From Chlorokybus atmophyticus (Eukaryota; Plantae; Mesostigma and Chlorokybus algae): a stretch of 64,000 nucleotides of DNA. A program made the position numbers and the translations under genes. The notes beneath the pieces were generated by a model. That model saw only the letters and a list, made by a program, of their open reading frames with translations, searched no databases and was not told the origin of the DNA. Location of the stretch: positions 13,451 to 77,450 of the forward strand of contig RHPI01002272.1 of the NCBI GenBank assembly GCA_009103225.1, written 5' to 3'. Position 1 is the first letter of the stretch. Every line of letters begins with the position of its first letter. Below, piece after piece: positions 22,258 to 57,900 of this stretch.

Positions 22258-23230
22258 GGCATCACAGTGTTGGAGCTGTTCGGAGGCATTTGCAGTGGTC
22301 TTGCTGCGGTCCTCAACACGGGCGTGAAGGTTGTCAAATATTATTACTGCGACCCAGACCCACACGCGCAAACGGTCCTCAAGCACCACTTACGCCAATT
22401 GCACGCCAGGTATCCACGTCAACTACCCCTCTCGGCGTTGCAAAGCAGCCTCAAAGCATTGCCACAGGACATCCGGCTGATCACTGAAGATCACCTACTG
22501 TCCCTCGGCAACGTCGACCTGTTAATAGCTGGATGGGAATGCCAAGGGCACTCCAGGGCAGGCAAGGGGCAAGGCCTCGAAAACCCTCGCTCCGGGCTGT
22601 TATGGGAGATGCTGAGGATCATCCACCTCCTTCAACACCACCAGATCTCCAGACCCCTGGGGTACATCATCGAAAATGTGCATTCAGAGGACGACAAGCG
22701 TCCGCACGTGGCCTCCAGCTACCGACAAGTTTGCTCCATTCTGGGGCACCCACTTAAGGTGAACGCGGCACGACATGGCTCGCGCGCACATCGTGTACGT
22801 GATAAATGGACAAATTTGGCCACCGTGGAGGAACTCATGACCGCCGAATACACACGCAGCGCTCGGCCGCGCAACCTGCTGGTCGACGACATCCTTAACC
22901 CCGGCCGCACAGCACAACCTGTCCTGCGTCATGACCACAACCACTTCTACCCGTGCAATCAGCGCGGTCAGCCCCGTCGCGCACTCCCAACATTGGTGTC
23001 CTACCCGGGCTCCTACGCATTTCGGAACGGTGGTGACGGAATGGTGTTCGATGCGACCACCAACAGGCTGAAAGAACCCAATGCACGCGAACGTGAACGC
23101 GCCATGGGATTCTTCCCCAACAGCATCACGGGCTCATCGCTGACGGACAGTCAGCAATGCCAGCTGCTTGGTCGCGCCATGGACCAGAACAGCATGGTAT
23201 GGCTGATGGAGCTGAGCTTCGCGTTGCAAA
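22258..23230 (+). CDS. C5 cytosine DNA methyltransferase domain within pol
   Basis: Motif I VLELFGG, IV LLIAGWECQGHS, VI YIIENV, VIII AHRVR, IX ERERAMGF, X LLGRAMD. In frame with the downstream RT (ORF 22267-24102); an upstream TAG is at 22255-22257. Confidence 0.9.
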
Positions 23231-23499
23231 ACCGCCACGTGTCCTTCGAAGATCTCGAATACTTGGCTGGGGGGTGGGCTGATCGCGTGGCCGACACCAA
23301 GGCAGCTCACACAGCCCTCGAGGTGATCCACATGGAGGAGCAAGCAGCAGTGACAGTGGAGGACATTCCTGTGGTTGCCAATGCAACCTCCTGGGACCAT
23401 GCCATTGGCCCGTTGGCCAAAGAAGACACTCGAGAGAAGCTGGAGGCTCTCCTCAACAAATGGAGGAGCCAATTCAGCTTCAATGTGAAGGAATTGGGT

Positions 23500-24645
23500 A
23501 CATGTTCAGTGTACCAGATGGACATCGAGCTGGTGGACACTGAGCCGGTGTTCCGACGACAATACAGGCTCTCAAAGTTGGAAGAAGACTTGGTGGAACA
23601 GAGATGTAAGGCGCTGCTGGATGCAGGCCTTATCGAAGAGTCCACATCGGACTTCGCAGCAGCAACCGTCATGCCACTGAAGAAGGATTCATTAGGCAAC
23701 TGGACAGAGCGACGCATGTGTGGCGACTATCGCCCCCTCAACAACAAGACCAAGCAAGACCGGTACCCCATGCCCACAGCAGAGGGTATTTTTGATGATG
23801 TGGGAGACTGCACAGACTTCAGCATCCTGGACATGCGTCAGGGGTACAACCAAATCGCCATCAAGGACGAGGACAAGCACAAGACCTCCCTCTGGGGCAA
23901 CCGACAGTTGTACCAATGGAAGGTAATGCCGTTCGGGCTGAAGAATGCCCCCGCCAAGTTTCAACGCGTCATGGACAAAGCCTTGAAGGGGCTGGACTGC
24001 GCGCGGTGCTACATCGATGTCATCCTCATCTTCAGCCGCAGCAACGAGGAGCATCTTCAGCACATCGAGCGGTGCTGGAACGACTCAAGGGAGTGGGGAT
24101 GACCGTACACCCCGACAAGTGTACCTTCTTCACCCACAAGGTGCCGTACTTAGGGCACATGATTGTGCCCCATGGTGTGTATGTGCAGCAGGCAAAAGTA
24201 GAGGCTCTGGCAGCTATCCCTGCCCCGACAGACCTCACACGCCTGCGCGCTTTCTTGGGACTTGCCAACTACTATCGCCGGTTCGTGAAGGACTTCGCGA
24301 AGATCGCAAGGCCCCTCAACGAGCTACTGAAGAAGGAGGTGGAGTTCGCGTGGAAGGAGCCGCAACAGCAGGCCTTCGAGGAGCTGAAGAGCAGGCTCAC
24401 CAGCGCTCCCATCCTTCAACGTCCGGACTACGCCAAGCCTTTCATCCTTCACACCGACTGGAGCAAGCTGGGGATGGGAGCGGTGCTGGTGCAGCACGAT
24501 GAGAACAAAAAGGAGCGGGTGGTGTCATACGCCAGCCGAAGCAACAACAGCGCCGAGGCCAACTATAGCAGCTACGAAGGGGAGTGCCTCGCTGCGGTGT
24601 GGGCCATCTCCTTCCGACCTTTCCTCTTTGGTCGACAGTTCCAAC
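23500..24645 (+). CDS. pol: Gypsy reverse transcriptase and RNase H, degenerate and truncated
   Basis: RMCGDYRPLN, LDMRQGYNQI, MPFGLKNAPAKFQR, CYIDV (YIDD altered), FLGLANYYRRFV, LHTDWSKLGMGAVL, NYSSYEGECLA. Frameshift near 24075; homology ends near 24645. Confidence 0.95.
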
Positions 24646-29960: not shown

Positions 29961-30544
29961 TGCGTGCATGCAATAAACGTGTGCATCTCGACTGTGATGC
30001 ACATGCGCTGAGTAAGCACAGAATGCAGGCATGCACTGTGCAAGGAGTGAACATGGTGAGTTCAGCGGCAGGTATGATCGCCCGCGGCTGACTGTTTGAC
30101 GGCATTGGTACAGGTTCTGCATGAGGCTCGGCGTTGCTCCCATCAACAGCGCTGTGCGGGTACCGAGCGCTGCGCTTTCCCAACCAGTGCGCACAACGCG
30201 GCTGGCTTGGGCAGTGCGGGCCATGGCTGGCAGCGCTGGTGATATGTAAGTCGTCGACGCCGCTGCAAATGCCGTGTGCCATCACTGTCGCAACATTCTT
30301 AGCTTCATGTGCTTGTCTGCAAACCAAATAGTATCGCCTTACTGCACTCAATCGTAGGCGCGTGCTTGGTAGCTTGGTATCTGTATAGCTCGGCTATTCC
30401 AGCTGGTTAGCTTTTGGCCAGTTCCCTTTGCCACCTTTTAGCAATCCCCATTGATGTAAGATTTGACTTTGTAAACTGAACCGCATCCTACCCACAAAGT
30501 AACTACATGTGCGTGGAAGGCAGCCACGCATGCAGCAGCAAACT

Positions 30545-31345
30545 TCTGTGTTCATCAGCTACTGTCAGAAGGACAAGTCACATGCGCAACCTGACGTGCG
30601 AAACCTAGCGGACAGATTACAAGCCGATGGATTGCTGTGTCTTTGTGGACTACATGAATGACGGGACAGTGTCGTGGCCTGTCTTTGTCGGACAGATGCT
30701 GGAGGACAGACCAATGCGCGCACGTTGTTTAGTTGCACCATTGGCCAGCCCCGTGTGACCGCAATTGCATGCATGGTGTGTGGTGTACTTAAGTTGCTGA
30801 GATGCTGGGTTCAGGTCGTTGTTGCCTGTGACGAGCACTACAAATTTGATTCCCTCAAAGAGCCAGTCTTAGACAGCATCGACTTGCTGGGCAGGGGTAC
30901 TCCTGACGAGTACACCAACATCCTTTACAAGGTGTATGAGCAACAATATTGAACGGGCTGGCTGGTGCCAGTAAACTTTATGCCTCCTGGTGAGATAAGC
31001 CACGTCCCCAGCCAGATTGTCAAGTTCAGTTACTATTCCATCAATTGGCAGATTAAGGTGAGAGACAGGGTTTCCACTGTGACTGAGCTTGCTGGCTGAC
31101 TAAAGAGTACCTATCAGACGGCTCTAGTTGACCTGCCGATCAGCTCCCCTTGATGCTACGCATCAGCATGTGTGTGCTTACGCTGTATGTTCAAGTAGTT
31201 ATGAGCAGTACTTGATCAACACGCTTGCAGAACCCTGCTGACCAAAGGTACGACGACTTGCTGAAGCGCTTGCATAGTATCTCACCGTTTGTGACAGCAG
31301 CTGGAGCTACTGCCACGGGGCGCCGCCAGCTAGCACTGCTCTAAA
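30545..31345 (+). pseudogene. SEFIR (TIR-superfamily) domain, copy 1, three exons
   Basis: SVFISYCQKDKSH..VRNLADRLQADG..VFVDY..SWPVFVGQM | VVVACDEHY..GRGTPDEYTNILYKVYEQ..WLVPVNF..HVPSQI (exon 30815-31057) | NPADQRYDDLLKRL (from 31231). One frameshift and one TGA (30950). Confidence 0.75.
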
Positions 31346-31396
31346 CGACAGGTGATGGTTGTTACAGGCCTAAATGACAAAAAGAAGGTCGACGGA

Positions 31397-32248
31397 TGCA
31401 GCTGCTGATGGGATGGCAAGTGCTCGATCAGGCTTGTGTTTTGGTCCTTCACGTCGCAGTCAATGCACTGGCAGCAAGTGCGTAGCACCAGTACCAGTGC
31501 GTTCCTTGGAGTAACTGCTGATTGCTATGCACGAGTCGCCGATCTTCAGCAGCAGCTATCGCCAGCTCCTCGTCACAGGCGTACTTGTCAGTCAGAGAGT
31601 TGTTTGAAAACGAGGACATTCTCATCATCAATCTGTGGAGGGAGAGAGCTCAACCTGCAATGGACAGGCTTGTTGAGTTTTAAAACTCTTGCTCAGATTT
31701 CTACAGCAAATGTGCTCTCACCAATTGTGCTCTTACCAACAAGATGGCAGCCCTGAAGCGAAGCTCCTGCAGCTTATAAAAAACGCGCGCAGGTATGCGC
31801 CTATTGCGTTGCTTATAGCTACCTTGCCAGAGCACACACCCAGTGCGCACATCCACGTTTGCACAGCCTCTTTGTCGCCTATGACCGCCCCTTCACTTCC
31901 ATTGTGTACATGCAGGGTGGTCTATGACTTTTGGTACAAGGCATGAAATTGGTACACGACCAGGCTGCTGCCTGTGGATTTCTTAGCATCCGCAAGCATT
32001 GGGTTGGCAGAGGAAACGATTACAGACTGCTTGTGGAACCCATTGATATTGCAAATTATTACCGCCTGAAGCTGTGCGAGCAGTGGCGCGAAGGCAATCG
32101 TCATTACCTGGAGGCGAACAACCGTCCAGTTCAATACGTGTTTCTGGAACTTCGGTACGAGAAGTACAACCCAGGTAGCGTTGCACCCTCGTCAACGGAC
32201 CATGCGCTTCATGAAGCAGACGCGGTTGAGGCCAGCGCGCAGCTGTAG
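31397..32248 (+). pseudogene. EDS1/PAD4-type EP domain, copy 1, no lipase domain seen
   Basis: PAMDRLVEF*NSCSDFYSK, then NAR|RVVYDFWYK..HWVGRGNDYRLLVEPIDIANYYRLK..GNRHYLEANNRPVQY. GT-AG intron 31793-31915; stops and frameshifts present. Confidence 0.8.
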
Positions 32249-32354
32249 AGCTCGCATGCAAGCGCGTGCTCACTACAGCTATGGCAACCAGCAACGCTTC
32301 CAATTGCCATTTGGGTGAGTCACCTCGTACAGCTAGGTTGCAACTCTGAACACT

Positions 32355-35300
32355 TTACAAGGCGGATGGTAATGTACATACAGGACGGTATGCAGTAGAT
32401 GGTTGAAAAGCCAACAGAGGCTTAGCGCACTGCAATACTAGTGCAAACACCAGAAAACATTGCAGTTGCAGGGCTTGATGCAAAACAAAGTCATGCGCCA
32501 ACATGTCCACCATACCATTGTTGACAAGTATGATGTTGCTGGCTTCATGTATAACACATGTGTTCCAAGTTAGTGTGGACCCCAACTGTGTGCAAGTTTT
32601 TTGCGTCAACATGTCTACCTTATCACTGATATTGGAAGGCCTAAGCGCTTTGAGGCATGTAAGGCAGGCAGTGCAGGATGAATTACCCCATCTTTCCTGG
32701 GCGGCACAGCTGCCTGCGGATGAGGCAAACATGGTTCAAGCTTGTGCCTAGCAGCTTTGACAAACACCTGTCCAACTTTCTTAACACAATGTCGGGTTGT
32801 CCATTGGCGGCTTCAAACAGTAGCGTCTTGCACTGCCCTCTTGTTGACGACCTTGACTACGCTCTTCCTTGGCATGGAGTCCTTGGAAGGACTTCCGAGA
32901 TCAGCGTGTACAAGCCCCCCGCAACAACATGCCACTGCATCCTCATTGAACGATTGAGCATGATTGATTCTGTGTGACGCTGCAGCTGCAATCTCATACT
33001 GCAAAAGCACTAAAGCAGGGTATATAAAGCGCTTTCACTGTGTACAATGTGTGACAATGGCTGCAGCCATGAGAGCAACAATTGCCGTGCACGCAATACC
33101 GTACGGTAAGCATATGCATATCTGCAAGCTACAACTGCTTTCTCTGCACACTGGTATATATGTCAAGCTTGCTCAACTGAACTGCCAAGCCAACTGAAAA
33201 ATTTTCTGGAATTGGTGGAGGTGCACTAATGGACTTGACTAGTAGCTGAACTTTTCGGCAGGGCTTGTGGTCAGCTATGTAGAGGATTTCAGTAGGAGTA
33301 AAGCGCCCTGAGAATTTTCGATCTGTTTGGACATCAAGTGCAAACCACTCAGAGTTGCTATCTTCGTTTGCATTTGCATTCATAGATCCCCTCAACTCCC
33401 TGCATCAAACAAGCTAGGCTCAATTGTGTCACCTTCACCAAGCTCAGGCATACAATGCTTGGCCAACAACGTCTCAACCCACCAGCATGCAGGGTCGCGA
33501 TCGGGGCAGTCGTTCGCGCTGGTTACGCAGTAAGCTTCAACAACGTGCTCTTGGTCGTCCTTAAAAGTGTATGACAGCCAGCTACCTGTGTTGAAAGCAA
33601 ACTGGTCAAGACAATAAGAGCATAATGAAACGCGTGCAGCATTGTGTATGAACTTGAACTTATTGCTCTTGTCTGCACACGCATCACGTCAGCCACGTCA
33701 ACATGTGAGCTTGTCACTCACTCCAAGCCTCTCCAGTTCTGAAGGCAAGCCATTTGGTCTGGACATGGCCATCAAATGCGCAAATACCCAACTCATGCGG
33801 ACGCCTTTCACCCGAGCACTTCACCCACCCACCAGCTATGCGTGGGCCGAGCATTGCCAGCTGCTTCCAATGCTTGGCGCTGCCAACTTGTGTTGCTGTT
33901 TCTTCTACAATATCGAGCAAGCCTGGATGCACGTCTATAAGCCCTTATACACGTCACCCCGTCACATTAGTCATATGCATGCGCCAGCAATCACCGTTGA
34001 GTTCTTGCTTGTCGAGGATACCCTGGAAGACGTCAAGCCCTTCAACAAGGACCGTCAACGCGTCCACCGGTAAGGGCTTATGCTGCAACTGCTGCCGGCA
34101 AACTCTCACTTTCTCCTGCAATTCTTCAAGCCAGGTGCTAAGGGCCGCATCTGTGGTGTAGCGCCGAAGCTGCTTGTGCATTGCGTTCATAATGCAACTT
34201 GCGGCTTCATCGCAAGCCGGAAGTCTATCTGCTCAAGCCAGCAAAGGGTCAGCACCATCCCTGGTGCCATTGATGAGAGCAAATACAAAAGAGGCAAAGA
34301 ACAGTGACAACAGATGAGAGAAAATGATGCTGTTCCTACCTTTAGATTTCGCCATCTGGAACATTGTGGCAACTCGCCTGAAGTTGGTACTTGCTTCGCG
34401 CTCCAACTGCGCTTCCAGCTGGTGCCACACAAGCTTTTTGCAATTGCGAATATGTTCAGGCACCTTGAGTAAGTTATTCCCCCAAATCCGTAACTCCTCC
34501 AAATGTTGCAACGACAGCTCGGGTAGGTTGTTAAGCTTATTGGAATCCAACACCAGTTTCTTCAACTGTTGCAAGCGATTGACTTCTTGAGGTACCTCGA
34601 CCAGATCATTTTGTGACACATCCAGCACTTCAAGGTGATGCAGTTCCCACAGCTCATTGGCTGGCAATGATGCCAAACGAGTGTTGCACAGAATTAAATA
34701 GCGGAGGTCCTTCATCTTGCACACCTGTCAGGAAGCTGATGAGCGGCGCAGCATGGGAAGGAGGAAGGGGGCATATGCCCCCTATGCACTGATGCAGGAA
34801 AGATGCGCATTTACGACCAGCTGTTGCTCGTATGCCCCGACCTGCAGTATTGTTCATAGTACATTGCCAGCATTGCACGCCCCTCACCTGCTGTAACAAG
34901 CCTTCTGGGTTACAATCGACATCTATTGAGCGCCAATGCTTGAGCTTCGGGAGCTCCAAATTGGGAATGGCACGCAATTTGCTGCAGAAGTCCAAACTAA
35001 GGAAAAGCAGATGTGGCAGCTTTAAACAAACTACTGTGGGTGCTGTGAGGGATGTCAAGGAGACGCAATAAGCGAGATCCAACATCTGCAGCAGGCATGA
35101 GATCAGTGGCATACTTGCATGCATGCAGATGCGGGCAGTGAGAGAGCTGCACCTGCAGATTTGTAAACTTATTGATGTCCGGCAGGATGACAAGTCTACC
35201 GCAACGTGTCAACACCAGCGTTTGCAGTGAGGGCAGCTGCAGACAAAAAGAACCAGGACAGGGTGTAATTGAAGCTCTGCCAAGCACGAATAAGAATATT

Positions 35301-37180
35301 TCATTCCGTTTTGCAACTCACTTGGATATTTGCCTCTGCATCCCAGAGCTGCTCAAAACTGCCAAGGGACAAATCCAAAGCATAAAGTTTGTTGTATACT
35401 GCTGCTTCGATCACTTGCACGTTGCGCAGCATGTTCACTTGTAAGGATACCAAGTGCTGTGCACTGCCTTGTAGAACCAAGTATGAAGCACAGTTCACAG
35501 CCAGTAGCCGCAGGCCTGGCCCGAATTCATCTGGTGCAACCCGCTCACGATTGAGTTCGACCTGTATCTCCGAAAATTCGCCCTGCAGTTGACACTCAGC
35601 CTGTCTCAGTACTCTGGCCAATCTGAGGCCTTGACAACTTTCACAATCTCACTATGCTGTGCATGGCGCAATGCACTGTGACAGCAACACGGCGGTAAGC
35701 GACAGGAGCGCCTAGTCTGGACACATACAAAGTAATGTGCGGCACACCTGCTGAGGGATTCCGCTGACATGATGCAACGTCGAAGGTTGGAGACATGAAA
35801 GCTGTTGCGGGGCTACCGTCTTTTTCAATTGCGTTCCTAGAATCACTAGCAAATCATGCATCACCAACAATCTACCAGCTATCTCTGGGTGTTCTTCCAC
35901 ACTTATAAGGGAGCTCTCTTGGAGGTTGAGTAGCACACGAGGAATTCCCCTTCGAAGGTCTGCAAGATCTCCAGGGCTGGTCCAGATGTACACTCCAGCT
36001 CGATACCCGCTATAAGTGCGTAGAAACGGATAGCACGCCAGGTCTTGAAATGCATCACGTTCCTTGCTTCCAAGGCGGGTCAAGCTGAACTCAAGGATGC
36101 TGAATATGCCATCTTCCTTCTCACCATGTAAACTTTGCATTTCTGGTAGCCGCTCCAGATAGTGAAGAAACTCAACACGACTTTGATTACGCAGCGCACT
36201 TCCAATCACCTGAAGTGCCAGTGGCAGTCCACCGCACGCCTCCACAATGGATTTAACGACAGGTGCACATACTCGGAAGGACTGCCCGCGCTCACCTGCA
36301 GCGCATACGTGCTCATGCAGCTCGTTACAAAGGAAATAATCACTCAGGTTGAACTCGTCCGTACAAGCGTTGTAAATAATGCCAGCAAACTCGTCTTGTT
36401 CCTTGCGAGTGTGCTGCCGGTATGCATGTCTGCAGAACAGGGTGATAGCATCTAGTGGCCCTAAACACGACACTTGCAGAATTTCCACATTCCCCGGGTA
36501 CTCCAGCCACCTGCGCTCCCAGGAAGTGAGAATCACCTTGCTGCCTGCAGCCACGGGCACCAGCAAATAGTCCGCTTGCTCCTTGGTAGTGACATTATCC
36601 ACGACAAGCAGGACTTGCTCGTTTCTAAGGCGTTCTGTAAGTAACTGTCGTCCATCGCTCAAGTCGAGCCCAACATTGTCATCGGCAGGGGTCTTACAGA
36701 GGGCCCTCAGCATGGCTCGCTGCTGTTCCTTCAGTGCCACGGTGCTCTCTCCTGGATCAAGTGTGATGAAGCAGCTTCTTCCGCAATAGTCTGCGACAAA
36801 GTAATTGTACACATGCTTGGCTATGGTAGTTTTGCCCACACCTCGCATGCCAAGCAGTCCCACCACCGTGTGCGTTTCCAAACGCTTTATAACAGGTGCA
36901 GAGCGTGCATGGATGTCAACAGCCTCAACTGTAGCCACGGGCTTATGATGTATGCTCAGCTTTTGGCAAACCCAATGGACGACTTGTGTGGTGAGTTCCA
37001 CTTCATTCCTGCACATGCAACGATACCAGCAGATCACAAAACTGGAAGGATGCGAGATTTTGGGCACAGACATTGTTCGTACAACACAACAAACAGTACG
37101 CTGGCATACAGCAGTCCGATTCTAGCACCCAAAGCGTCAACTAGATGCCGCCAGCTCAGCAGCAAGCAACACAGACACAG

Positions 37181-37263
<83 letters not shown>

Positions 37264-38060
37264 CACTTGAACTCATTGCTTCTGATGCCTGGTATATCGA
37301 AAAGCTTTGCCATAGCCTGTAGCCAGTTTTTTCTTGTCTCCTCGTGCACCTGTTGCCCTTCTTCTATGGGTTGCTGTTTGATCAAGTCGAACTGCTGCTT
37401 CTGCAACTTTTCAAACCCGGTGAGTGGGGGGGTGGGGAGGGGGGTGGGGAGGGGGTGGGGTGGTTGTTCCTCGCTCCAGTAGAACACAGGTACGATGTTT
37501 TTGCTTTCGTTAATCGCTTTCACCAGCTCTGTTAGGCAGTCTATCGACTCCGAAAATCGCTGGGAGAGAATGACAACGACAACCTGTGCAGCGCTCAAGG
37601 CGTCCAACATACTTTGCTGCGCACTTGGGCTCCCTTTCAGATCATTGTCATCAAGAAAGGGTTTGATAGAGTAGTTGGTGCGTTTCAACGCCTCATAGAT
37701 ATACGAGGCGAATGTTCTCTTGGTGTCGGGTCCTCGATGGCATATGAACACATTCCACTGCACACACTCAGTCAGTGCTGAACAATACACAATGCGGTTG
37801 TCACACACACACACACGCGCAGGCGCAGGCGCACATATAAATGTATATAAGTGTATATGCATATAATGGAGCATTGGGTTCCTGTGTGACGAGCAATTTG
37901 AGACTGGTCGCGTCAGCGACACCATGTGACGCAAAGAGATACCCACACAATGCCCAATCACATGAGGAAGTCTCAGGGAGCTTACTGCGGGTGCCGGGTC
38001 TTTGAGATTGTCAATGCTACAACCTTCAGCAAGTGTACTGAGAGATCCCAATGAAGTCAT
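32355..38060 (-). CDS. TIR-NB-ARC-LRR (TNL) immune receptor 1 with extended C-terminal exons; some lesions likely, 3' boundary approximate
   Basis: TIR VFICHRGPDTKRTF..SIDCLTEL (37267-37777). NB-ARC P-loop GMRGVGKTT, LLVVDNV, GLPLAL, MHDLL (35712-37008). LRR exons about 33950-35620. Confidence 0.9.
37187..37260. repeat. (GA)n microsatellite in the TIR/NB-ARC intron
   Basis: Directly visible, next to the GTGAGT donor (minus strand) at 37261-37266. Confidence 0.95.
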
Positions 38061-39099
38061 GACTGCGGGCAAGCGGGCTAAACAGAGAACGACGTGGTAC
38101 TGTCCTCAGTGTGCCCGCACTGCTGCTTCACAAATCAACCCTGCGATTAGTTCGTGAAGAGGCGAGTGCCGAGATGAACTTCAATTACCCTCACATGCGA
38201 TATGGGCGGATATACAAGGCATCTATTAGTGGTCAACTTTTATGTCTGGCCGGCTGCATGCATGCAAGATATGCGATCAGCGATATGCACGTGTGCAAGG
38301 CGTCTGTTAGTGGGCGTCGATTCATGTCTGGCCGTCTGCATGCATGCATGCTCGCAGTGTACTCTGAATCAAAGAACGGATGTGACCGCATCCGCATAGT
38401 CATCGTGTATGCGCATTGAGCTAAGGCAGGTAGGGTCAGAGAAGCTGTGCCAAAGGCAGTGGCCAGTCACAAGGTCACTGTGCATTCTGGCATGGCAAGT
38501 ACGTACAGCTGCTAGGCGACGACCTCACGCCCGCCGCTGCCTGCCCACAGCAGCGAGGAGTGAGCCTCGCTGAGGTGCAAGAGCGACTCTGGACTGGCGG
38601 AAGAAGCAATCGCAAGCAGCGCTGCCAATCCGCTGGGCGTGGGGCGCAAGGAGGCCGGCACCGGCGGCCGCAACACCGGCAGCAGAGGCAATATCCGCCA
38701 ATCCTGGTCGGGGCAGTGGCCAGCGCGGCACAATATCTGATGCCATTTGGCTACACGTTCTGGGCTCCTGAGGTTCCTCTGACCCTTTTCCTCTGCGGTC
38801 GTACCACCATTCCAAACCACCTAGGTGTTCCTCTCGCACCGCCGACAAACTGCGAAGGGCACGTTTCAGGCCTGAAACGTGCCCTCCGCATTTGGTCGCG
38901 GTGTGAGAGGAACCGCTGGCGGTGGCGGCGGGGGCGGGCAATGTGGAGGGCGAGGGCGCGGGCACAAGACTAGCACAACATGCACCCAACACTGGCAGCC
39001 ATCTTCGCCCTGCAGCTCGCTTGCCTCTACTGCTTCCAGCAAGCAGAGTCAGTGATTGCATGTGCCCGGTGCGGGTCTCTCGTCTGCGACTCTCGCTAG

Positions 39100-41910: not shown

Positions 41911-42597
41911 GCCGTCGAGTGTGCATACCTCTGTGTTTATCAGCTATTGTCAGACGGATCCAGAGCATAGAACGCGAGTGAGGCAGCTAGGAAGCAAGTT
42001 GCGAGACGGACGGTATCACGGTCATCGTTGACTACAAGCATGACGAATCATTGTCATGGCCTGATTTCATCATACAAATGGTGGCACCAGGGGTGAAGGT
42101 GGGCATGCACTATACATGTGCTCAACTCTGTTACTTGATTGAATGAGCAACACCCGTGATCGTCGGGTTTGCAGGTCATTGTTGCTTGTGATGAGCATTA
42201 TGCGAGACACTGTCAAGGCCAGCGACCGCCCGGGGTGGGCCCCACATTACCACTCCCCTCATCACCAGGTGAGGGGAGCGGTATTGGCGTTCGCATTGAG
42301 ATGAACCTTATTTCCAACAAGCTGTACGAGCAACCAAACAATGCTCGTTGGCTAGTGCCAGTGCTGTTCGTACCGCCTGGCAGAAGAAAGCACGTGCCAA
42401 GGCAAATTGCAATGTACGATCACGTCATCATAAAGTGGCAAGAGCAGGTCAGACGGAAGCACTGTTTGGGTGCTGCTTGTAAGGTGCTGATGTGACGCCA
42501 CTAATTTTTGACCCGCGCACCCGCTCATCAACTCTTACAATTTCAGGAGCTTGATGGGCAAGGTTAAAATCAATTATTGCGACGCTTTTCAGCCTAA
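41911..42597 (+). pseudogene. SEFIR domain, copy 2, three exons
   Basis: SVFISYCQTDPEHRTRVRQLGSKLR-DGITVIVDY..SWPDFIIQM (41911-42098) | VIVACDEHY..GIGVRIEMNLISNKLYEQPNNARWLVPVLF..HVPRQI (42175-42447) | ELDGQG*NQLLRRF. Intron positions match copy 1. Confidence 0.8.
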
Positions 42598-42919: not shown

Positions 42920-42959
<40 letters not shown>

Positions 42960-43558
42960 NGGGTCTGTGCATAATAGCGCACCAGGAAGTACACGCCGGG
43001 TGACTCATGATACTGCAAAAGCAGAGCTAAAAGCAAGACAAATAGCAGATGCTCACCTTGCCAAATGCAGTGTATGCGTGCCTACCAACACGTGGTGCAT
43101 CAAGTAAGTTCATGCATCTTTGAAGTTGTGCCGCACAACTTCAAAGATGCATGAAAAGGAAGGGCAGCACTTGCACCTGCTGTGCACCTGCTCACCAAGT
43201 TACTGCGGGCTGCAATATGCTTCATGCATGGACCTGTCGTCAAGGCATGACATGACATATCCACGGCCATCATTGTCACGATTATCAAGCTGTAACATAT
43301 GCACACCAATCTATTGACTCATCACTTTAACTGCAACGTTTGCCCACCCTCGTTGACACAGCGCACAAATGGCATACCGGTCGCATGCCAATGACCGTCA
43401 TGCCATGCACACATATCCGGCTAGACCATATGCATACACACCAGCGAATGTTGTGCAGATGTATACAAACAACTACATATTGCAACCGTCTGCAGACAAA
43501 GCCTGCTATGTCGCCGCGCCAATTGACAAGTGTGAGGTGGGCAAGGTTCCGAAAGATG

Positions 43559-44260
43559 CTAACTACCTAAACGCCTCACCCACCTTAACAGCTTGCGAAG
43601 TGACGTTAGTGACTCCGCTTTATCATTGGAGAGCTGATGAGCCCGCTGCCTGAGGATATGATTGGGCTCCCGGGCCTCTCTCACCCCAGCAGTGACGAGC
43701 TCCTGCAATGCGTTGTTGATTGAGCTCTCTTGCCTCTCGGGGTACGCATTGCGGTATGCCTGCTCCAGCAGGTAATAACGCCGCGGCCGCACAACAGCCT
43801 CAGCAACCGAGAGACGAAGGTAATGCTTGCCGGTGGAGGCATAAAAATTCGCACCCTTTGGAGAATACCAGTTGGCAATGTCAATGGGCTCCACCAGCAA
43901 CCGATAGTTGTTGCCTCTTGCGAGCCAGTCGCTTGTGGAAGAAAGAATGTCCTCTGGGATGGAACCGCGCTCGTACTGCGTGGTAACCCAATCCCAAAAA
44001 TTCTTAAGTTTTACCCGAGCTTTCTCAATCTGCGGTGGCCGGTTCTATTTGAAGCCAACATAGTAGTCTTGTTCGTCCTGGTACTGCTTGATAACATCCA
44101 TCGCGTCATCAACACCATCGTACTTCATAGACAGCTCTGCTGCCTGCCTGTTTCGAGCATCTTCCCTGTTGCGCACAAAAGCATACAGTCCAAACAGGAA
44201 CCCGAGCAAGCCGACCAGACAGGCGAGGATGCTGGGCCAGGGAGGCGCTGGTTCAGCCAT
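43559..44260 (-). CDS. Transmembrane-anchored stand-alone EP-domain protein, copy 2 (intronless, one internal TAG at 44045-44047)
   Basis: MAEPAPPWPSILACLVGLLGFLFGLYAFV (TM)..DAMDVIKQYQDEQDYYVGFK*NRPPQIEKARVKLKNFWDWVTTQYERGSIPEDILSSTSDWLARGNNYRLLVEPIDIANWY..GKHYL..RPRRY. Confidence 0.85.
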
Positions 44261-50049: not shown

Positions 50050-53000
50050 GCATGGAAGGCGCCTATCGCTCCTGTCTGTCTCAAAGGGCGTTCACCTCGT
50101 CGTACATGCCCTGCCTTTAAAGCGCCAGTGCCGGGTTGTCAGAAGAAGCTGTCGCCTTGTAGAGGCCAACGAGCCTAAGCTTTGCTTTGGAACTCGCCAG
50201 CACCCGTCGATGCAGGGCTGTGGCCTTGCCGAAGTCGTGATTTTGATCAATAGCAACTGCTATGCAATTGTCAAAAGCGTAGCCAACATGATGAGCCTTG
50301 GCGACGCTGCAAGATGTGCTCGCATCTGCGCAAATTGCTCTGCTCCTTGCAGCGTGGGAAGGCTACACAGCCCTCGACCACCCATTGGTGACCAAGAGAT
50401 GCGACTGCCATTGTAGTCAGAGCACCAAGCCCTGCCACCGGTGGTGTACCCAGCGATTGGGTGGGTCGCCTGACAAATAGCCAACACAGTCAGTACACCA
50501 GCAGCAGGTGCTTAACACCATAACCATCGCGTGCAGTGTCAGCAACATGTGTGTAGGTCGGTGTCTTAAAGTGGGTGTGCGTGTGTTGAGTGTCGTTTGC
50601 GAATCTGGATGTGCATGCAGATGTTTCAGTCAGCATGCATACTAGTATGTGTAAGTCGACCTACCAGAGTGGCTGCGTGCGTGAGCGCGTGTCAGCTTGT
50701 GTTGGAGAAGGTGTGTGCGCATGCGCGTGCTTGCATTGGTCGACGTACGCGTGTGCATACGGTGCCTGTGCCAGGCATAAAGCACAGTGTCCAGTCAGTC
50801 TGTAAGACTCGTTGCAGTACGCATATGTATGAACATGAGTAACTGTGCACAATGTGTGTACGCCACTTTGAGCAGCTGTGCGAAACGAGCATGTGTGTGT
50901 GGCCGCTCTTACCCTGGTACGGTGAGGGGCAACCATACCCTGCATTGCCTCACCCTCCTACATACCATTGCGCACATACCAGTGAGACAACATAAGGATT
51001 CTGGCAAAGCTGCCAAACCGCTGTACTGTAATTGCTTCCGTCCTGCTCCTGCAGCGCTGCGATTGCACTGGTAGATCAGTATAAAGCTGACGTTGAAGCA
51101 GACTTACTTCTCTCCTCCTCCTCTTCCGCCGCCTCCCGCTGGTGCTGCTGCAGCACAGCCACAACAACAGGAGCCAACCTACTGACAAATTACGGCAGCG
51201 ACGCCAAGTTGTTGCACCCGGGTTAGGTACGTATATTGCAGAGCAGCGAGGTTGCCAAAGGATTCCGGCAGCAATGCCAAGCTGACGCACCTGGTTAGGT
51301 CCACCCTTGCAGCGCAGCGAGGTTGCCGAAGGACTCCGGCAGCGATGCCAAGCGGTTGCAAGCGTTCAGGTCCAGCTCTTGCAGAGCAGCGAGCTTGCCG
51401 AAGGACTCCGGCAGCGACGCCAAGTTGTAGCACCACCTCAGGTCCAACTTTTTCAGAGCAGCGAGGTTGCCGAAGGACGCCGGCAGCGACGCCAAGTTGT
51501 CGCACCGACTCAGGTCCAACTTTTTCAGAGCAGCGAGGTTGCCGAAGGACGCCAGCAGCGACGCCAAGCTGTCGCACTCGCTCAGGTCCAGCTCTTGCAG
51601 AGCAGCGAGGTTGCCGAAGGACGCCGGCAGCGACGCCAAGCTGTCGCACTCGCTCAGGTCCAGCTCTTGCAGAGCAGCGAGGTTGCCGAAGGACGCCGGC
51701 AGCGACGCCAAGCTGTAGCACTCGCTCAGGTCCAGCTCTTGCAGAGCAGCGAGGTTGCCGAAGGACTCCGGCAGCGACGCCAAGCTGTGGTGGCACTCGC
51801 TCAGGTCCAACTTTTGCAGAGCAGCGAGGTTGCCGAAGGACTCCGGCAGCGACGCCAAGCTGTCGCAACACCTCAGGTGCAACTTTTGCAGAGCAGCGAG
51901 GTTGCCGAAGGACTCCGGCAGCCATGCCAAGTCGTAGCACCTGTTTAGGTTCAGATTTTGCAGAGCAGCGAGTTTGCCGAAGGACTCCCGTAGCGACGCC
52001 AAGCTCTGGCACTCGGCTAGGTGCAGCTCTTGCAGCTTAGCGAGTTTGCCGAAGGACTCCGGCAATGCCGCCAAGCTCTGGCACTCGGCTAGGTGCAGCT
52101 CTTGCAGCTTAGCGAGTTTGCCGAAGGACTCCGGCAATGCCGCCAAGCTTCTGCACCCACTCAGGTCCAGCGCTTGCAGCTCAGCAAGTTCACCAAAGGA
52201 TTCCGGCAGCGCCGCCAAGCTCGTGCACTGGCGCACGTCCAGCGTTTGCAGCTCAGCGAGTTTGCTGACAGACTCGGGGAGCATGCTCAAACGCCATGCA
52301 GTGAGATGCAGAGCCTGTAGCCTAGTAAGCTCGCCAAGCACAGGCACCTCCATTAGACGGTTCTGTCTGCGATTGCCAGTGGGGTAGACCCGCAGCTCCA
52401 GGACTTGCAGCTCCTTGAGGTTTCTTAAGAACTCAGTCCGCAGCCTTGTGACATTGAACTGTCTGGTGTTGATTACATGTACGATGAGGACGACCAATGT
52501 TGTGTGTGCAGCGGCATTGCATAAGAAATTGTTCAAGGCTGAACAGCTCGCACTTTTCCACTCCAGATATACCAGGTCTTTCAGAACCCACTTGGTCACG
52601 CAGAATGCTTTTTTAATTGAATGCACGAAAGAGTCGCACGCAGTAGTTGCACGCAAGAGTCGCACGCAGCAGCCTTCTTTCTTCCTTGTTTTTCTTTGTT
52701 GTTGGCACGCAAGAGTGTGAGTGTAAACTTCGCCATCCCAATCAATCGTACCAAGGTCCAGCATGCGGAGGCGAGGCATGAAGGCCATGCCTCGTAATGG
52801 TGGGCTGCTGTTGACACCAGTCCAGGACATAGTCTCGGCGTTGTCAAAGCCCTGCATGCAACAACAACAACCCAATGATCAGCAATACCCACGTGTTCAC
52901 TCCACCAGCATGTTGTAACACAATCCTAGAACGTCGTGAATTGCAAGTTCTCATCGGATGCATGCATGCAGCAATCCTTGACAGGCCAGTAGAAAGGGAC

Positions 53001-54949
53001 ATGAGGTGAAGGAACCAAGATGGAACGTGGGCATTGCAAGCACCTTCATGGATATGGCGCTCAATGCCTTTGGCGACCAGATGTGCCTGGGCGGGTTGGC
53101 ACAATCGGCAATCATTCGCCCCATGTCGCGAAGTTGGTCATGCACTGAAAGGATTGTAGCTTTGCCATAAGCCACAGTCCTATAACCACGCCGCTGCCAA
53201 GGTCCAATAGTGTGAATAGTGCGAATATCATCCTCCGGGTCTCCACTTAAGCGAACGAGGGACCACTCCACCAGGCAATTCAACGCATCTGACCCGCCCC
53301 ACGCTGGAAGCAGCATGTCCTTGCTCTTCCCCAATGCAAAGCAGCAGATATCCAAAAACACTTGCTGCGTCTCGGGTTGTAGATAGTCGTAGCTGAGCTT
53401 GAGCTTGTCCCAGAGCTTGTTGTCAGCTGTACCTGCCACTGCGGTTGCCTGCTGCAGTCGCCACAGTGCGTCTTTCCAAGCCTGCACATCACCCTTTCTG
53501 CGCGTGTGGAGAAAGGAGCCCACGACCTCCAGTGCAAGCGGCAGGCCCTCACACGCCTCGATGATATCTTCAACAATGGTCTTCAGATCTGCAGGCACTA
53601 CTTGCGATCTGAAGGCATGTTGACAGAACAGTTCTCTAGGGTACTGACCATTGAGTGGACCAACATCCTCCACCAACGTATGCTTCTCATGCCCCTTGAT
53701 TAAGTTGCAACTACGAGAGGTCACCAGCACACGACTGCCGGTACCAAGCAGAGGGCTGGCGTCGTCTAAACCGAAAGGACCAAGCAGGGCTGCTTCTTGA
53801 TCGTTACTCCAAATGTCATCAACAACGAGCAGCACCTTCTGCCCTTGCAAGCGTGCCTTGAGAGTTGCCTTTCCTTCAGCAATGGAGTTGAATTTATAAC
53901 TAGAGTTGGGACCACTCCCAAGCTGTTCAAGCATCTGCTGTTGCAGCTGTACCAGCCTCCCATTGTTTTGGCATGGTTCGTTTCCGACCTCTAGAAAGCA
54001 GCAGCTGCCAGCAAATGTGCTGCGCAGTTTATTGTAGATTGCCATTGCCAGCGTAGTCTTCCCAATGCCACCCATGCCCCATAGCCCTAGTAAGACGACC
54101 TTGCTTCCTCTGGTAGCAGCACTCAACTTCTCGAGTACAGCTTTAACGCGGCGATCGATGTCCACCGGGTTTGCGGCAACATCCAAAGGTGGGCGGTCCA
54201 ACGTTTCCAGCACGTCGTCCACCACTTTCTTGGCTAAACAAACCGGGTCACTGACAAACAATAGCAACCATCAGGAAACCACACATGACAACCTTAGTGG
54301 AGATGTTTCCCAGTGACACCTTACCCATTCTCAAGCCTCAGGCCCGTTTTTCCAAATGCTTTTGCGAGCGCATCACGGTATGCAGACTCATTCTGGATAT
54401 ATCGCTGCTGGCCACTCAGGCATGCGCTGAAAGCACAAAACGTGTTTGTAACCAGGAACGCAGCTGCCTGACTGACAAGTGACAGAGTGTAGGAAAGAAT
54501 GCTCACCTGCGTATACTTTGCTGAATTGTGACTTGTAGGCTGTCAAAGTCGTCATCGAAGAAGATGGGCTTGACGATGTTGGTTGGATTCTCCATCATGA
54601 TGCGCAGCTCTTCCAGGCAGTACCAGGAGTCCCCGTAGTTACGTGACAGAACAGGCATTCTGATGCAAGCGGACTGTACATTTTGGGTGATCACAGTCCA
54701 GGCTTCGTCCCCGGGCTGCAAGCTGAGCTCATCCACAAAGCAGGTCAAGTTCACTTGCTTCAGAAGGTGACTTAGAAAGTAAACGAAGTTCTTCTTGACG
54801 TCCCCTCTATGGCTCAAGAAAATGTCACTGCCAGGGCGAGGGATGGTCTTCGACGGAGTCCATTTGCCTGTGATGTCAACGTGTAAGTTGGTTGTCAGTG
54901 GACTCAAGGTGACTGTAGACAATGGCACTTGATGAATTGAAATCTGCAA
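50050..54949 (-). CDS. TIR-NB-ARC-LRR (TNL) immune receptor 2; last LRRs and post-LRR exons disrupted
   Basis: TIR DIFLSHRGDVKKNFV..SWYCLEEL (54503-54949). NB-ARC GMGGIGKTT, LLVVDDIW, VLVTSR, GLPLAL, VHDQLRDMGR (52951-54267). LRR ORF 51295-52875. Frameshifts and a TAA near 51190-51300. Confidence 0.95.
51240..52260 (-). repeat. About 14 tandem 72-bp (24-aa) LRR units, central ones nearly identical in DNA
   Basis: Unit LASLPESFGNLAALQELDLSECxS; DNA unit gccgaaggac.ccggcagcgacgccaagctg..gcactcgctcaggtccagctcttgcagagcagcgaggtt. Confidence 0.95.
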
Positions 54950-57900
54950 CCTTCTTGCACATCAAGCTGCAAAGAGTAGCGCGAAACACATGCGCAGCAT
55001 ATGCAGCACCACAATCAGAAAGGCGCATCTGTGTTGTTCACCAGCTTACCGTCCTGATTTGCATTTGAAGCAGACATTGAGACAACCAAGCAAGCTCCCC
55101 CGTGTTAGCCTGCAGCAACAAGTGTTACTTGAGCTCACAATGCCTGTGCGCAACCATGACACACGCACGCAACCACATGTATAGGCTGCCGATACTCAAG
55201 TATATAGCTGCACTAGCAGCACGGTGCTTGCCAGCGGAATGCAATGGAGGGCATGGACTGCACACTGATGACAGGCAGCGTGTGCTTGTGCTACCTGCGC
55301 ATGCAGTCTCTGGCCGCAACAATTCCGTGCGCAACTCTAACGACAATGCACCAAGCAAGCCCTAAAGTGAGTGTACCAAGAACCGTACATGGCTGCAGGC
55401 GAGTTCGACTCTACGCGCAATGTATCGTGAACGGCCACTTGTAATAACTCACTACCTATGAGGCTGCGGCCTAGCACAATGATAAACTGAACGTTTGCCG
55501 ACCAGTGGAGTGGTTTTCGCTGACGGATGCGCTTGGACAATATGTAATGAAGTTAAGTTCCTGCCATGGCGCTGCCGTCCAACGCCAGCACCGCCAGCTT
55601 GCAAGTGGCATGCATGTCTGTCAAGCATTGCATGGCCTATCTGCGTTTGGCTAGCTAGCTGGCATGCTGCTCTGGCATGCTTGCTCGCGACAACCAGCGG
55701 CGAGCAAACATGCCGCACACGACCAGAAACGGCAACGCACCTTCACCCGGTGCGGTCCAAGTCAGGCTTCAGCTGCGCTTTGCGTCCTGTCGGCCAACGT
55801 GCTTGTCCGCCTGCAGCTTGTGTGGGTCGTCGTCGTCGCCCCTCGCGCCTTCCGCCGCTGCTCAGCGCTTGCTCTGGTCCATGCCCATGCCGCCCGCTGC
55901 GTCCTCTCAAGGCTGACGCGGAGCCAGGTACCGTGACAAAGTGCCGCGGGAGAGCAACTCCAGATCGATGAACAAGTTGAGCGGGTTCGAAGCTGTCGCG
56001 CATCATCAATGTCATGACTTTGTCCTTGAATCAGGCGCCAAATAGCCTACCGCTGACCCTGACCGGTAACAGTGCTACCGGTAGGCCTGTACAAAGATGT
56101 CAAGAAAACCGCGTCGTATACCGGTAGCTGGTCCTGTAGTATGGTAGGTCTCCCGAACCCTTTGATACCGGTATCAATTCCCGGATTAATGTCATGTGCA
56201 TGATGTGCTTTCAAGTCATGTCATGCCTGCACATGCGTTAAGCAAGCTCACGCCTACTGCGGGGCAGCCAGCCACGGGCTCCACCCTGGGCCGGAGGATT
56301 CTGGCGCACATCTTGGCTTTTCTCATGCTCATGCTTGTAACAAGCATGAACTTGTGAAGTGACATGCGAAATCAAACACTCAGGCTTGTTTGCTCGACTT
56401 GCCGGCGGCACGACACGTGGCTGTGCGTTGAGGTGGTGGCGGGCGGGCGGCAGTGTGTGTCCGCCGCTGGGCTGGAAGAGCTCTCTAGGAGGGTGGTGAC
56501 AGAAGCGCAGCGCAGCAGGCGCCAGCTTCGTCTGTCAGCGCCATGCCATGCTGGGCGGCGCTGGCGGCTTAGCAGTTGCCAACGGCGCCAGCTGGGAGCT
56601 AGCACGCCGGACGTCTGACGTAGATGGCTACAGCTGCAAGCACGGCTTCGGCCTTCCAGGCAGGTGCTCTGGGCAGGCAGCAATGGCGAGGCATTGCTGC
56701 CTGCCCTCCACAAAGCTTGTGTAGCAGCTGAACCAACTTCACAGTTCGTGACTCAGCATTGTACCGCACAACTACCACAGGTCAACTGATCAGCGCCTGT
56801 GTGCCATACAGTGTATGTTCTCATGCATGTGTCCGTGTACATAGACGCATGTGTGTGTGCATGCATGCGCCTATGTACACGGACGCATGCATGCGCACAT
56901 CTGCGCGTGCGCACGCATACATACACTCACATCTTCACATACAACCCTTTGGATGTGTGCTTCTTGCAGCCATCAGTACTTTAGCTCCTTGTGAGCAGCA
57001 CCGTATTCATGGCAAGCCTGCTGTTGTATTTGAGTATGTGCAGTTGTTCTGTTGTCAACGTCAATAGGGCCTTACTGCAGGCAGCAACAGTACTAGCTTG
57101 GTGCAGTTGCAGAGCAAGAAGTTGTCGTGCACGATGTAAACTGTTAATTATCGAATTGATACAGTCTGCTTCTGCTGTAGTGAACTCAGCTAACAACGCT
57201 TGACACCCCCCNNNNNNNNNNNNNNNNNNNNNNNNNNNNNNNNNNNNNNNNNNNNNNNNNNNNNNNNNNNNNNNNNNNNNNNNNNNNNNNNNNNNNNNNN
57301 NNNNNNNNNNNNNNNNNNNNNNNNNNNNNNNNNNNNNNNNNNNNNNNNNNNNNNNNNNNNNNNNNNNNNNNNNNNNNNNNNNNNNNNNNNNNNNNNNNNN
57401 NNNNNNNNNNNNNNNNNNNNNNNNNNNNNNNNNNNNNNNNNNNNNNNNNNNNNNNNNNNNNNNNNNNNNNNNNNNNNNNNNNNNNNNNNNNNNNNNNNNN
57501 NNNNNNNNNNNNNNNNNNNNNNNNNNNNNNACTCGTATGCCCACGCAACCACTTCTGTTACCGCACATGTGTGCACACGCGGTCAGATCCGTCAGTTAGG
57601 AGTGCACACACACTGTGTGTGGCATGCTTGCATGCCCCGAGGGGGGAGGTTGTCATTGTTTGTTTGTCTCAGCAGAGTTAATAGCTCTACAGCACTCAGT
57701 TTCTTTGAACTGCAATTTTGCACAGGAGTTGGGCGCGCTGCACTCATTGTAAGGCTGGCCTGCACCGCGCTTGGCTTAGCAGTAGAAGCAGAAGCGCTTG
57801 CTGGATGGGCGGACTGGCATTCTATAGGCTGCCTGCGGTGCTGACTGCAGCTGCATCCTTAATCACTGGCGCTGGCTACTGGAACCATACATATCTCCAC

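Follow-up and report, generated by a model that had tools for sequence, protein, structure and literature searches.

The subject of this report is a locus of the streptophyte alga Chlorokybus atmophyticus in which pieces of a SEFIR domain are followed by pieces of the EP domain known from EDS1, PAD4, and SAG101. The locus runs on the plus strand from an ATG at 30530 to a TAG at 32246-32248 of a 64,000-nucleotide stretch of contig RHPI01002272.1 (assembly GCA_009103225.1; the whole stretch is called the window here) and consists of coding-like pieces of the two domains. We conclude, with a probability of about 0.8, that it is a pseudogene, the decayed copy of a gene for a single SEFIR-linker-EP chain, and not two tandem genes. 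Very probably no protein is made from this relic in the Chlorokybus genome. A first-pass annotation of the DNA had described a SEFIR domain directly followed by an EP domain at 30545-32248. This layout was recovered as a SEFIR/TIR-like stretch (from 30530/30545) with an EP stretch after it on the same strand, ending at the same TAG; the annotation's proposal of a SEFIR-EP fusion holds for the family and for the origin of the locus, while the window copy itself is apparently dead. Judged by sequence comparison, the pairing of SEFIR and EP at the locus is genuine and far beyond chance. Chance similarity as the source of the domain calls was considered and is excluded by the E values and by the match in fold. 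Contamination from a seed plant or a chimeric assembly, which the annotation had named as grounds for dropping its proposal, is ruled out by the closest relatives, which are Chlorokybus models at 74 to 88% identity, and also by runs with the same organism label, which contain the stretch; the host is a streptophyte alga.

Descent from a single SEFIR-EP gene

Intact paralogues, for which the annotation had suggested a tblastn search, exist as one-chain SEFIR-EP models in the public proteome, P0015 (Chrsp103S01043; 415 amino acids) and P0080 (Chrsp235S03603; 416 amino acids), which are 82% identical to each other. Each carries in one chain a membrane anchor, Pfam SEFIR (41 and 38 bits, respectively; the cut-off for PF08357, STIR clan, is 23 bits), TIR_2, and EDS1_EP, and the EDS1_EP scores of the intact paralogues range from 39.6 to 42.7 bits. 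When P0015 was aligned to the three plus-strand frames of the window, eight segments were obtained in the correct order, spanning P0015 residues 68 to 415 and including the linker (Table 1). Because SEFIR, linker, and EP follow one another as they do in P0015, the locus derives from one SEFIR-EP gene. The linker is common to P0015, P0080, P0081, and P0017 in the family alignment, and its presence in the relic means that the fusion is ancestral to this copy.

The annotation had noted an apparent TAA ahead of the EP frame and held that one open reading frame (ORF) could not be told from two tandem genes. The TAA does exist, at 31342-31344, but it is not the end of a gene, with homology to the P0015 chain on both sides of it. 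Because 31249-31293 and 31561-31680 are homologous to the P0015 linker and first EP helix, the stop marks no boundary between two genes, and the ordered alignment settles the question toward one ancestral gene; on this sequence evidence, two tandem genes seem unlikely. The distance from the end of the linker match (31293) to the next match amounts to about 98 codons, versus 17 residues in the intact paralogues, by comparison with P0015 residues 226 to 244.

A SEFIR-only gene ending at the TAA with an EP-only gene downstream, linked and unfused, would fit the stop and the roughly 200 nucleotides (nt) without homology that follow it. Stand-alone EP proteins are known (P0001 and P0007), and the second SEFIR and EP pair of the window consists of separate genes on opposite strands. 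However, the pieces on the two sides of the TAA follow the linker and first EP helix of P0015/P0080 in their order and without a change of frame; ahead of its conserved helices, the EP part lacks a start codon, signal, or anchor; and disabling lesions occur in both halves. We therefore consider the tandem arrangement extremely unlikely.

The relic resembles P0015 and P0080 in its order of SEFIR, linker, and short EP, with 41% identity in the SEFIR part and 60 to 63% in the EP part. It differs from them in that they have open frames of 415 and 416 residues and an N-terminal anchor, whereas the relic lacks an anchor exon and carries three frame changes and several stops. No membrane-anchor exon was found upstream of the relic; the sole match in the window to P0015 residues 1 to 38 lies at 57805-57918, 27 kb away. 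That match, on the plus strand, is an orphan (71% identity over 38 residues to the P0015 anchor exon), with no SEFIR or EP exon detected 3' of it in the window.

The closest relative of the relic is the stretch from residue 457 to residue 640 of P0005 (Chrsp5S06985), a model in which an anchor-EP-TIR part is joined to a partial SEFIR-EP part. Identity reaches 82% in the second SEFIR strand and helix and 74% in the EP core, and both loci share RPVQY and the out-of-frame reading RTDYKP. Unlike the relic, P0005 has an open EP part with a Trp at the position of the relic's TGA, and the window has no anchor-EP-TIR gene upstream of the relic. A further model, P0017, has leucine-rich repeats (LRRs) before a shortened SEFIR and an EP domain.

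The SEFIR part

The SEFIR stretch matches residues 68 to 199 of P0015 at 41% identity (tblastn E value, 5e-29), and by this homology the window pieces belong with P0015 and P0080. The upstream pieces open with VFISYCQ and contain VVVACDEHY...GRGTPDEYTNILYKVYE...GWLVPVNFMPPG. Pfam searches with the eight separate frames returned EDS1_EP and a weak TIR_2 match (E value, 0.016; 43-residue piece) and nothing else. The broken SEFIR pieces alone, which are too short, fell below the thresholds for Pfam SEFIR, with that TIR_2 match as their best. The SEFIR/TIR_2 profile check proposed in the annotation thus fell short on the window pieces (TIR_2 E value, 0.016) and was passed for both profiles by the homologue P0015.

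The annotation had described a three-exon SEFIR domain, a structure that did not hold. The coding sequence continues through the supposed intron (about 30950-30964), which contains an in-frame TGA (30950-30952). Across this site the window reads VYEQQY*TGWLVPV, compared with VYEEQNLSGWLVPV in P0015; an intron at 30950 is ruled out by the ungapped alignment. The core exon ends at a donor, AAG/GTGAGAG. Model P0081 appears to keep an intron at the place of presumed intron 2, which is unspliced from 31085 onward in the RNA contig described below. No clear canonical donor was seen at the end of the frame-B exon, where relatives end the exon.

The annotation had also placed the Glu of GTPDE at the position equivalent to the TIR catalytic residue. 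This Glu is present (codon 30908-30910), and its equivalence to the catalytic position is ambiguous by two residues against the SEFIR domain of Bacillus cereus: in an alignment anchored on GxGT, the bacterial protein's own Glu lies two residues off the GTPDE Glu. An hhalign comparison of the SEFIR family with the TIR domains of the window aligned only 35 N-terminal columns at a probability of 1.3%, which is of no use for placing the Glu.

The EP part

The EP frame of the window itself, 31931-32245 (105 codons), was matched by Pfam EDS1_EP (PF18117) at 35.3 bits (E value, 1.2e-8), above the curated gathering cut-off of 23.1 bits, so that the EDS1_EP profile check proposed in the annotation came out positive. 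In a phmmer search against solved structures, the 89 residues from 31979 matched EDS1 (8zf0_B; E value, 6.9e-5) and PAD4 (7xey_B; 2.3e-4), with EDS1/PAD4 chains overall at 7e-5 to 4e-4, and also matched SAG101 chains directly. The structure-matching block of the core reads WV.RGN.YRLLVEPIDIANYYR...HYLEANNRP.QY, and the motif VEPIDIANYYR...GNRHYLEANNRPVQY is present as the annotation described it. The core is 74% identical to P0005 residues 552 to 640 and 63% identical to P0015 residues 330 to 415 (60 to 63% overall), and the EP part matches P0015 with a tblastn E value of 6e-29.

The EP domain is incomplete. Profile positions 60 to 107 of 211 are matched in the window copy and positions 14 to 125 in the intact paralogues; the EP domain of the family thus corresponds to about the first 125 of 211 positions, with the C-terminal half missing. 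The algal chains stop where seed-plant sequences run on for about 100 residues, a complete EP domain having about 211 profile positions and about 240 residues. Pfam detected no lipase family in the window pieces or in P0015, P0080, and P0017; the N-terminal domain is SEFIR/TIR_2.

Table 1. Parts of the relic, its lesions and antisense RNA, and the neighboring immune genes, in window coordinates
Feature	Position	Strand	P0015 residues (window positions aligned)	Basis or remark
SEFIR first strand and helix (MQQQTSVFISYCQKDKSHAQPDVRNLADRLQ), frame A	30530-30622	+	68-92 (30545-30622)	TIR_2 E value, 0.016
Lesion 1, +1 frame change	30623-30638	+		16 nt versus 15 in P0015; frame A ends at TGA 30659, frame-B homology from 30639
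SEFIR second strand and helix (VFVDYMNDGTVSWPVFVGQMLED), frame B	30639-30712	+	98-119 (30639-30707)	P0005 457-490 at 82%
Presumed intron 1	30713-30814	+		Acceptor cag 30812-30814; homology restarts at 30815 (VVVACDEHY); inferred, no RNA support
SEFIR core exon (VVVACDEHY...GRGTPDEYTNILYKVYEQQY*TGWLVPVNFMPPG...KFSYYSINWQIK)	30815-31057	+	123-199 (30815-31051)	Gap-free alignment
Lesion 2, in-frame TGA	30950-30952	+		Inside the ungapped P0015 alignment of the core exon
Presumed intron 2, GT..AG	31058-31230	+		Donor 31058-31059, acceptor 31229-31230
Linker exon (NPADQRYDDLLKRLHSISPFV...) running into TAA 31342-31344	31231-31344	+	212-226, linker YDTLVKHLGSVPAFV (31249-31293, YDDLLKRLHSISPFV)	Homology to the P0015 linker
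TAA and about 200 nt with more stops in frame	31342-31344 onward	+		17 residues there in paralogues
Degenerate stretch or lost intron	31345-31560	+		Several stops in the same frame as the linker
First EP-region helix (ASSSSQAYLSVRELFENEDILIINLWRERAQPAMDRLVEF; LSVRELFENE...AMDRLVEF)	31561-31680	+	236-278 (31561-31680)	E value, 0.001 in local search
TAA 31681-31683 and frame change	31681-31742	+		112 nt versus about 34 codons expected; different reading frame before and after
EP helix piece (DGSPEAKLLQLIKNAR-R)	31743-31792	+	292-308 (31743-31793)	
Intron 3, GT..AG, 123 nt	31793-31915	+		Splice sites read; kept in the sole RNA contig
EP helix VVYDFWYKA*NWYTTRLLPVD with TGA and 1-nt loss	31916-31981	+	308-333 (31914-31985)	Aligns to P0005 531-556 and P0015 308-339
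TGA, Trp in P0005	31944-31946	+		Inside a conserved EP helix
Loss of one T in a T run, frame change	31979-31981	+		Inside the FW...LPxDF helix pair
EP core (FLSIRKHWVGRGNDYRLLVEPIDIANYYRLKLCEQWREGNRHYLEANNRPVQYVFLE...), TAG stop 32246-32248	31979-32248	+	330-415 (31979-32239)	Pfam EDS1_EP; EDS1/PAD4 chains; P0005/P0015 identity
Antisense spliced transcript	31085-32400	-		Run X1 contig, 1,235 nt, 0 mismatches, k-mer depth 44
TIR-NB-ARC-LRR gene, convergent on the relic	34236-38072	-		Pfam TIR 2.8e-15, NB-ARC 3.7e-22, LRR_14 7.7e-13
Second, diverged SEFIR copy	41924-42459	+		tblastn with pieces of copy 1 and P0015
Second EP gene, membrane-anchored stand-alone EP, convergent on SEFIR copy 2	43562-44260	-		EDS1_EP 2.1e-13
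Second TIR-NB-ARC-LRR gene	54826-51298	-		TIR 54826-54515; NB-ARC 7.4e-30 at 54267-52954; LRR_14 4.6e-62 at 52875-51298

Lesions

The annotation's statement that this copy has lesions is correct and understated, as the copy has three frame changes and its premature stops number at least three or four. No open frame crosses the conserved domains, which are interrupted by the frame changes and by the stops at 30950, 31342, 31681, and 31944; the stops sit within conserved strands or helices. Contigs from two separate public runs are identical to the window over 30529-30685, 30715-30870, and 31085-32400. Because all of the lesions except the TGA at 30950 are repeated in those contigs, they are not assembly errors. 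The letters of frame A, in particular, are confirmed by a contig of run X2 over 30529-30685 with no mismatches.

RNA over the relic

The contig from run X1 (Table 1) consists of two blocks, 31085-31652 and 31735-32400; the 82 nt left out between them begin with CT and end with AC. The skipped bases are a minus-strand GT..AG intron (GTAAGAG...TTGCAG) from 31736 to 31655. The contig is continuous over 31735-32400, that is, across the plus-strand intron at 31793-31915, which it keeps, and it reads through the plus-strand lesions. Since a minus-strand intron is spliced and a plus-strand intron is kept, the RNA is antisense. Its longest minus-strand ORF beginning with Met has about 60 codons, and this spliced antisense RNA is apparently noncoding. 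No spliced plus-strand mRNA of the relic was seen in the run data, which are small and unstranded and make this weak evidence.

The interval from the relic to the stop of the convergent TIR-NB-ARC-LRR (TNL) gene, 32.4 to 34.3 kb, is partly present in three RNA runs with the same organism label. Run X3, from the same study, contains nothing of 30.4 to 32.4 kb and part of 32.4 to 34.3 kb. The antisense RNA may be a long or read-through 3' extension of the convergent TNL transcript, or it may be a separate RNA. The contig stops at 32400, probably because of a short repeat at 32394-32447; a second X1 contig matches these 54 bases only, with four differences and unrelated flanks.

These data bear on two explanations other than a dead relic. 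One is that the gene works, its lesions being strain polymorphisms or errors, or being bypassed by splicing, frameshifting, or editing to give a shorter SEFIR-EP or EP-only product. The region is transcribed; the closest relative, P0005 (74 to 82% identity), is modeled with an open EP and a partial SEFIR, and that model splices EYTNILK directly to VVKDFWYKAW. That three loci change frame by +1 at one position could also hint at something other than decay. Against this, the conserved FW...LPxDF helix pair contains both the TGA at 31944 and the loss of 1 nt at 31979-31981, so that splicing them out removes the domain. The RNA contig repeats both EP-helix lesions exactly and is spliced on the opposite strand, and the longest Met-started plus-strand frame with the EP motif, at 105 codons, is missing the first two long helices. 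A working gene is accordingly very doubtful in our estimation.

The other explanation is that the relic has been co-opted as a regulatory antisense RNA, which pairs with the mRNAs of intact SEFIR-EP paralogues or feeds small-RNA silencing. Consistent with this idea are the spliced minus-strand RNA over 31085-32400 (k-mer depth of 44 in run X1), the lack of a long ORF in it, and the 60 to 74% protein identity of the EP core to its paralogues. However, the RNA was found in one run only, and the absence of 30.4 to 32.4 kb from X3, together with the presence there of part of 32.4 to 34.3 kb, fits variable read-through from the TNL gene. Co-option of the relic in this way is highly improbable.

Fold, ligand residues, and possible working of intact members

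The structure of P0015 was modeled with AlphaFold2 and the family alignment. Residues 241 to 415 reached predicted local distance difference test (pLDDT) values of 83 to 96. In the SEFIR part, pLDDT was under 50 over residues 128 to 216; the alignment is five sequences deep, and this part of the model is of low confidence because the alignment is shallow. The top 16 Foldseek matches of the model in the PDB were all EDS1, PAD4, or SAG101 chains. VIA-align placed P0015 residues 244 to 400 on PAD4 residues 292 to 448 (Z, 17 to 18; root mean square deviation, 1.7 to 2.0 Å; 28 to 30% identity) and the model on EDS1 residues 362 to 545 (Z, 13 to 17), with the next fold at a Z of about 7. The superposition on EDS1-PAD4 proposed in the annotation, made here with the P0015 model, gave a fit to both (Z, 13 to 18).

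The low-confidence SEFIR model matches TIR-APAZ, TIR-STING, bacterial TIR domains, and the SEFIR domains of Act1 and the IL-17 receptor at a Z of 6 to 7; resting on such a model, these fold matches are only suggestive. The nearest ESM Atlas clusters to the SEFIR part are bacterial SEFIR/TIR_2 proteins (score, 0.94), and the family profile matches the B. cereus SEFIR structure 5y8f with an E value of 0.0016 over 87 positions. Pfam, the ESM Atlas neighbors, and the 5y8f match agree in classing the SEFIR domain, as far as sequence can tell, as bacterial type.

In EDS1, the phosphoribosyl group of pRib-ADP is read by Asp469, Asn472, and Tyr473, with further contacts from EDS1 Thr482 and Arg493 and PAD4 Lys379/380, Tyr383, and Phe387 (10.1101/2022.04.01.486681). 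In the HMMER alignments, D469, N472, and Y473 (within DIANYY) are kept in the alga, and the equivalent of PAD4 K379 is K. The core of the ligand pocket therefore appears conserved in these three DIANYY residues, and it might take the same ligands as EDS1/PAD4. At the position of EDS1 Arg493, the relic has Gln (RPVQY), P0015 has Tyr, and the membrane-anchored EP subfamily has Arg (RPRRY).

From these features a working order for intact members can be proposed. The chain consists of the anchor, a SEFIR/TIR_2 domain of bacterial type, about 40 linker residues, and a short EP, the last of which matches, by fold and by the D-I-A-N-Y-Y motif, the portion of EDS1/PAD4 that contacts TIR-made ribosyl nucleotides. 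The N-terminal anchor would hold the protein in the membrane, and the SEFIR part would oligomerize and/or cleave NAD+, as in bacterial SEFIR proteins. The EP part might then bind the nucleotide product or pair with another EP, and this event could be coupled to downstream partners, such as the neighboring TNLs. Such a chain would be the signal producer linked to a receiver that the annotation had envisaged.

Points that weigh against these conclusions

Several observations count against the pseudogene reading or the model of the family. The TGA at 30950 is covered by no independent contig, and run X2 may be the assembly's own source data and hence perhaps not independent. The stretch at 31345-31560 could be an intron instead of a product of decay. 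The intron positions and uninterrupted frames of the paralogues are taken from public gene models. The RNA evidence consists of one unstranded assembled contig from one small run labeled "RNA?"; the direction of the contig was deduced from splice-site letters alone, and contigs lose rare forms, so that a weak plus-strand mRNA may have been missed. As for ligand contacts, the relic has Gly in place of PAD4 Tyr383, Asp in place of Phe387, and Gln in place of EDS1 Arg493, and these contacts are not kept. NAD+ cleavage and nucleotide binding, the functional part of the model, are proposed activities.

Finally, SEFIR copies 1 and 2 have their +1 frame change at a near-identical spot, and the P0005 locus would have it there too, which is odd for independent decay. 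Simple independent decay would not account for three same-sign frame changes at one place. In both SEFIR copies of the window, the spot is the junction of the first helix and the second strand (30623-30638 and about 41995-42012). The P0005 model implies a +1 change a few bases upstream of the shared spot, as read from the out-of-frame RTDYKP.

Spread of the family

The second, better-preserved EP copy of the window (minus strand, 43562-44044) served as the query of an exhaustive HMMER search, which returned 79 proteins at an E value of ≤0.001, none of them identical to the EP genes of the window. The best matches are C. atmophyticus gene models (EukProt EP00898/JGI Chlat1). Since the window is 88% identical in protein to P0001 and 74 to 82% identical to the C-terminal part of P0005, it comes from a Chlorokybus-type alga that is probably not the Chlat1 strain. 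The search also recovered EDS1-family proteins of full length from conifers (e.g., Taxus and Picea), many proteins from metagenomes, and, in the chlorophytes Elliptochloris bilobata and [Myrmecia] bisecta, short proteins labeled "EDS1 EP domain-containing." The view, repeated in the annotation, that the family is seed-plant specific needs softening; UniProt itself applies the name "EDS1 EP domain-containing protein" to proteins of chlorophytes. When the SEFIR region was used in a word-based homologue search, only Chlorokybus proteins were returned, and the one-chain SEFIR-linker-EP architecture has so far been seen in Chlorokybus alone. An EP protein of [Myrmecia] bisecta (P0030; KAK9811796.1) carries N-terminal sub-threshold matches to MLKL_N (E value, 8e-4) and CotH, which hints that algal EP domains may be joined to other death or signaling modules besides SEFIR and TIR.

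Relation to known systems

The EP domains of EDS1, PAD4, and SAG101 (PF18117; 7xey, 7xjp, 4nfu, and 8zf0) share with the algal family the block W..RG..YR.LVEP(I/L)DIANYYR....HYLE..NRP..Y. The seed-plant proteins differ in having a lipase-like domain where the algal family has SEFIR and a full EP domain where it has about 125 of 211 positions; EDS1, PAD4, and SAG101 are from seed plants, whereas the host of SEFIR-EP is a streptophyte alga with a broken copy in the window. Bacterial SEFIR defense proteins (the Bacillus sp. NIO-1130 system and B. cereus 5y8e/5y8f) resemble the algal domain in their profile and ESM Atlas matches, and bacterial SEFIR is counted among NAD+-degrading defense domains (10.64898/2026.09.04.749371). 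Unlike them, the algal gene is in a eukaryote, has introns, and is fused to EP. The SEFIR domains of the animal IL-17 receptor and Act1 are in the same Pfam family, and the 9ot1 chains match in Foldseek and VIA-align at a template modeling score of 0.47 (target normalized) and a Z of 6.2, a weak match to a low-confidence model. Animal SEFIR proteins are adaptors acting through SEFIR-SEFIR contacts.

Surveys define EP proteins as having a lipase and an EP domain and restrict them to seed plants (PMC10834447; PMC9806590; 10.1101/572826). A 2026 atlas of eukaryotic TIR/SEFIR domains scanned EukProt, which includes the Chlorokybus proteins (PMC13142454), and the pair of Pfam domains SEFIR and EDS1_EP is already precomputed on the public Chlat1 models. 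Our literature searches turned up no paper linking SEFIR to EDS1 or to Chlorokybus. The SEFIR-EP proteins are thus public as data and apparently undescribed.

The seed-plant-only view (PMC10834447; PMC9806590) leaves TIR signaling in algae, bryophytes, and ferns unexplained. An EP domain without a lipase, with the PAD4/EDS1 fold and DIANYY, that is fused to SEFIR near TIR-type nucleotide-binding leucine-rich-repeat genes (TIR-NLRs) is a testable candidate for a TIR-to-EP link from before seed plants. On a broader reading, which we offer tentatively and consider rather unlikely, the relic would be one of many traces of an early streptophyte TIR-type immunity in which a SEFIR/TIR signal maker and an EP catcher sat on one chain beside TIR-NLRs. 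The EP nucleotide-sensing module would then be older than seed plants by hundreds of millions of years, and the lipase-like domain would have joined it later to give EDS1/PAD4. Conceivably, the antisense RNA of the relic might also tune the live paralogues. In practical terms, not every SEFIR-EP match in this genome is a live gene, and the relic is unsuited for experiments.

Genomic neighborhood

The relic is flanked by transposon remains and by the convergent TNL gene (Table 1). SEFIR, EP, and TNL genes are linked twice within 15 kb, once with the fusion relic and once with SEFIR and EP as separate convergent genes, and the relic sits in a birth-and-death immune gene cluster. It shows the turnover of its family inside an NLR cluster, like that of plant immune genes.

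The second SEFIR copy owes its +1 frame change to a GACG duplication near 42000. Just 3' of this copy, at about 42935-42970, lies a run of CCN/GGN codons (poly-Pro/poly-Gly) that contains N; it is probably an assembly gap and could conceal the 3' end of the copy. The second EP gene shares 88% protein identity with the Chlorokybus model P0001 and has an in-frame stop at 44045-44047 (GFK*NRPP versus GFKKNRPP, with Lys, in P0001). This gene, too, may be broken in this genome, or the stop, as read from the assembly, may be a polymorphism or an error.

The repeats of the second TNL gene (51298-54826) resemble the LRR front of the LRR-SEFIR-EP model P0017. On the other side of the relic, a plus-strand retroelement ORF at 22267-24099 combines RVT_1 (1.3e-18) and a C-5 cytosine DNA methylase (6.6e-10) in one frame.

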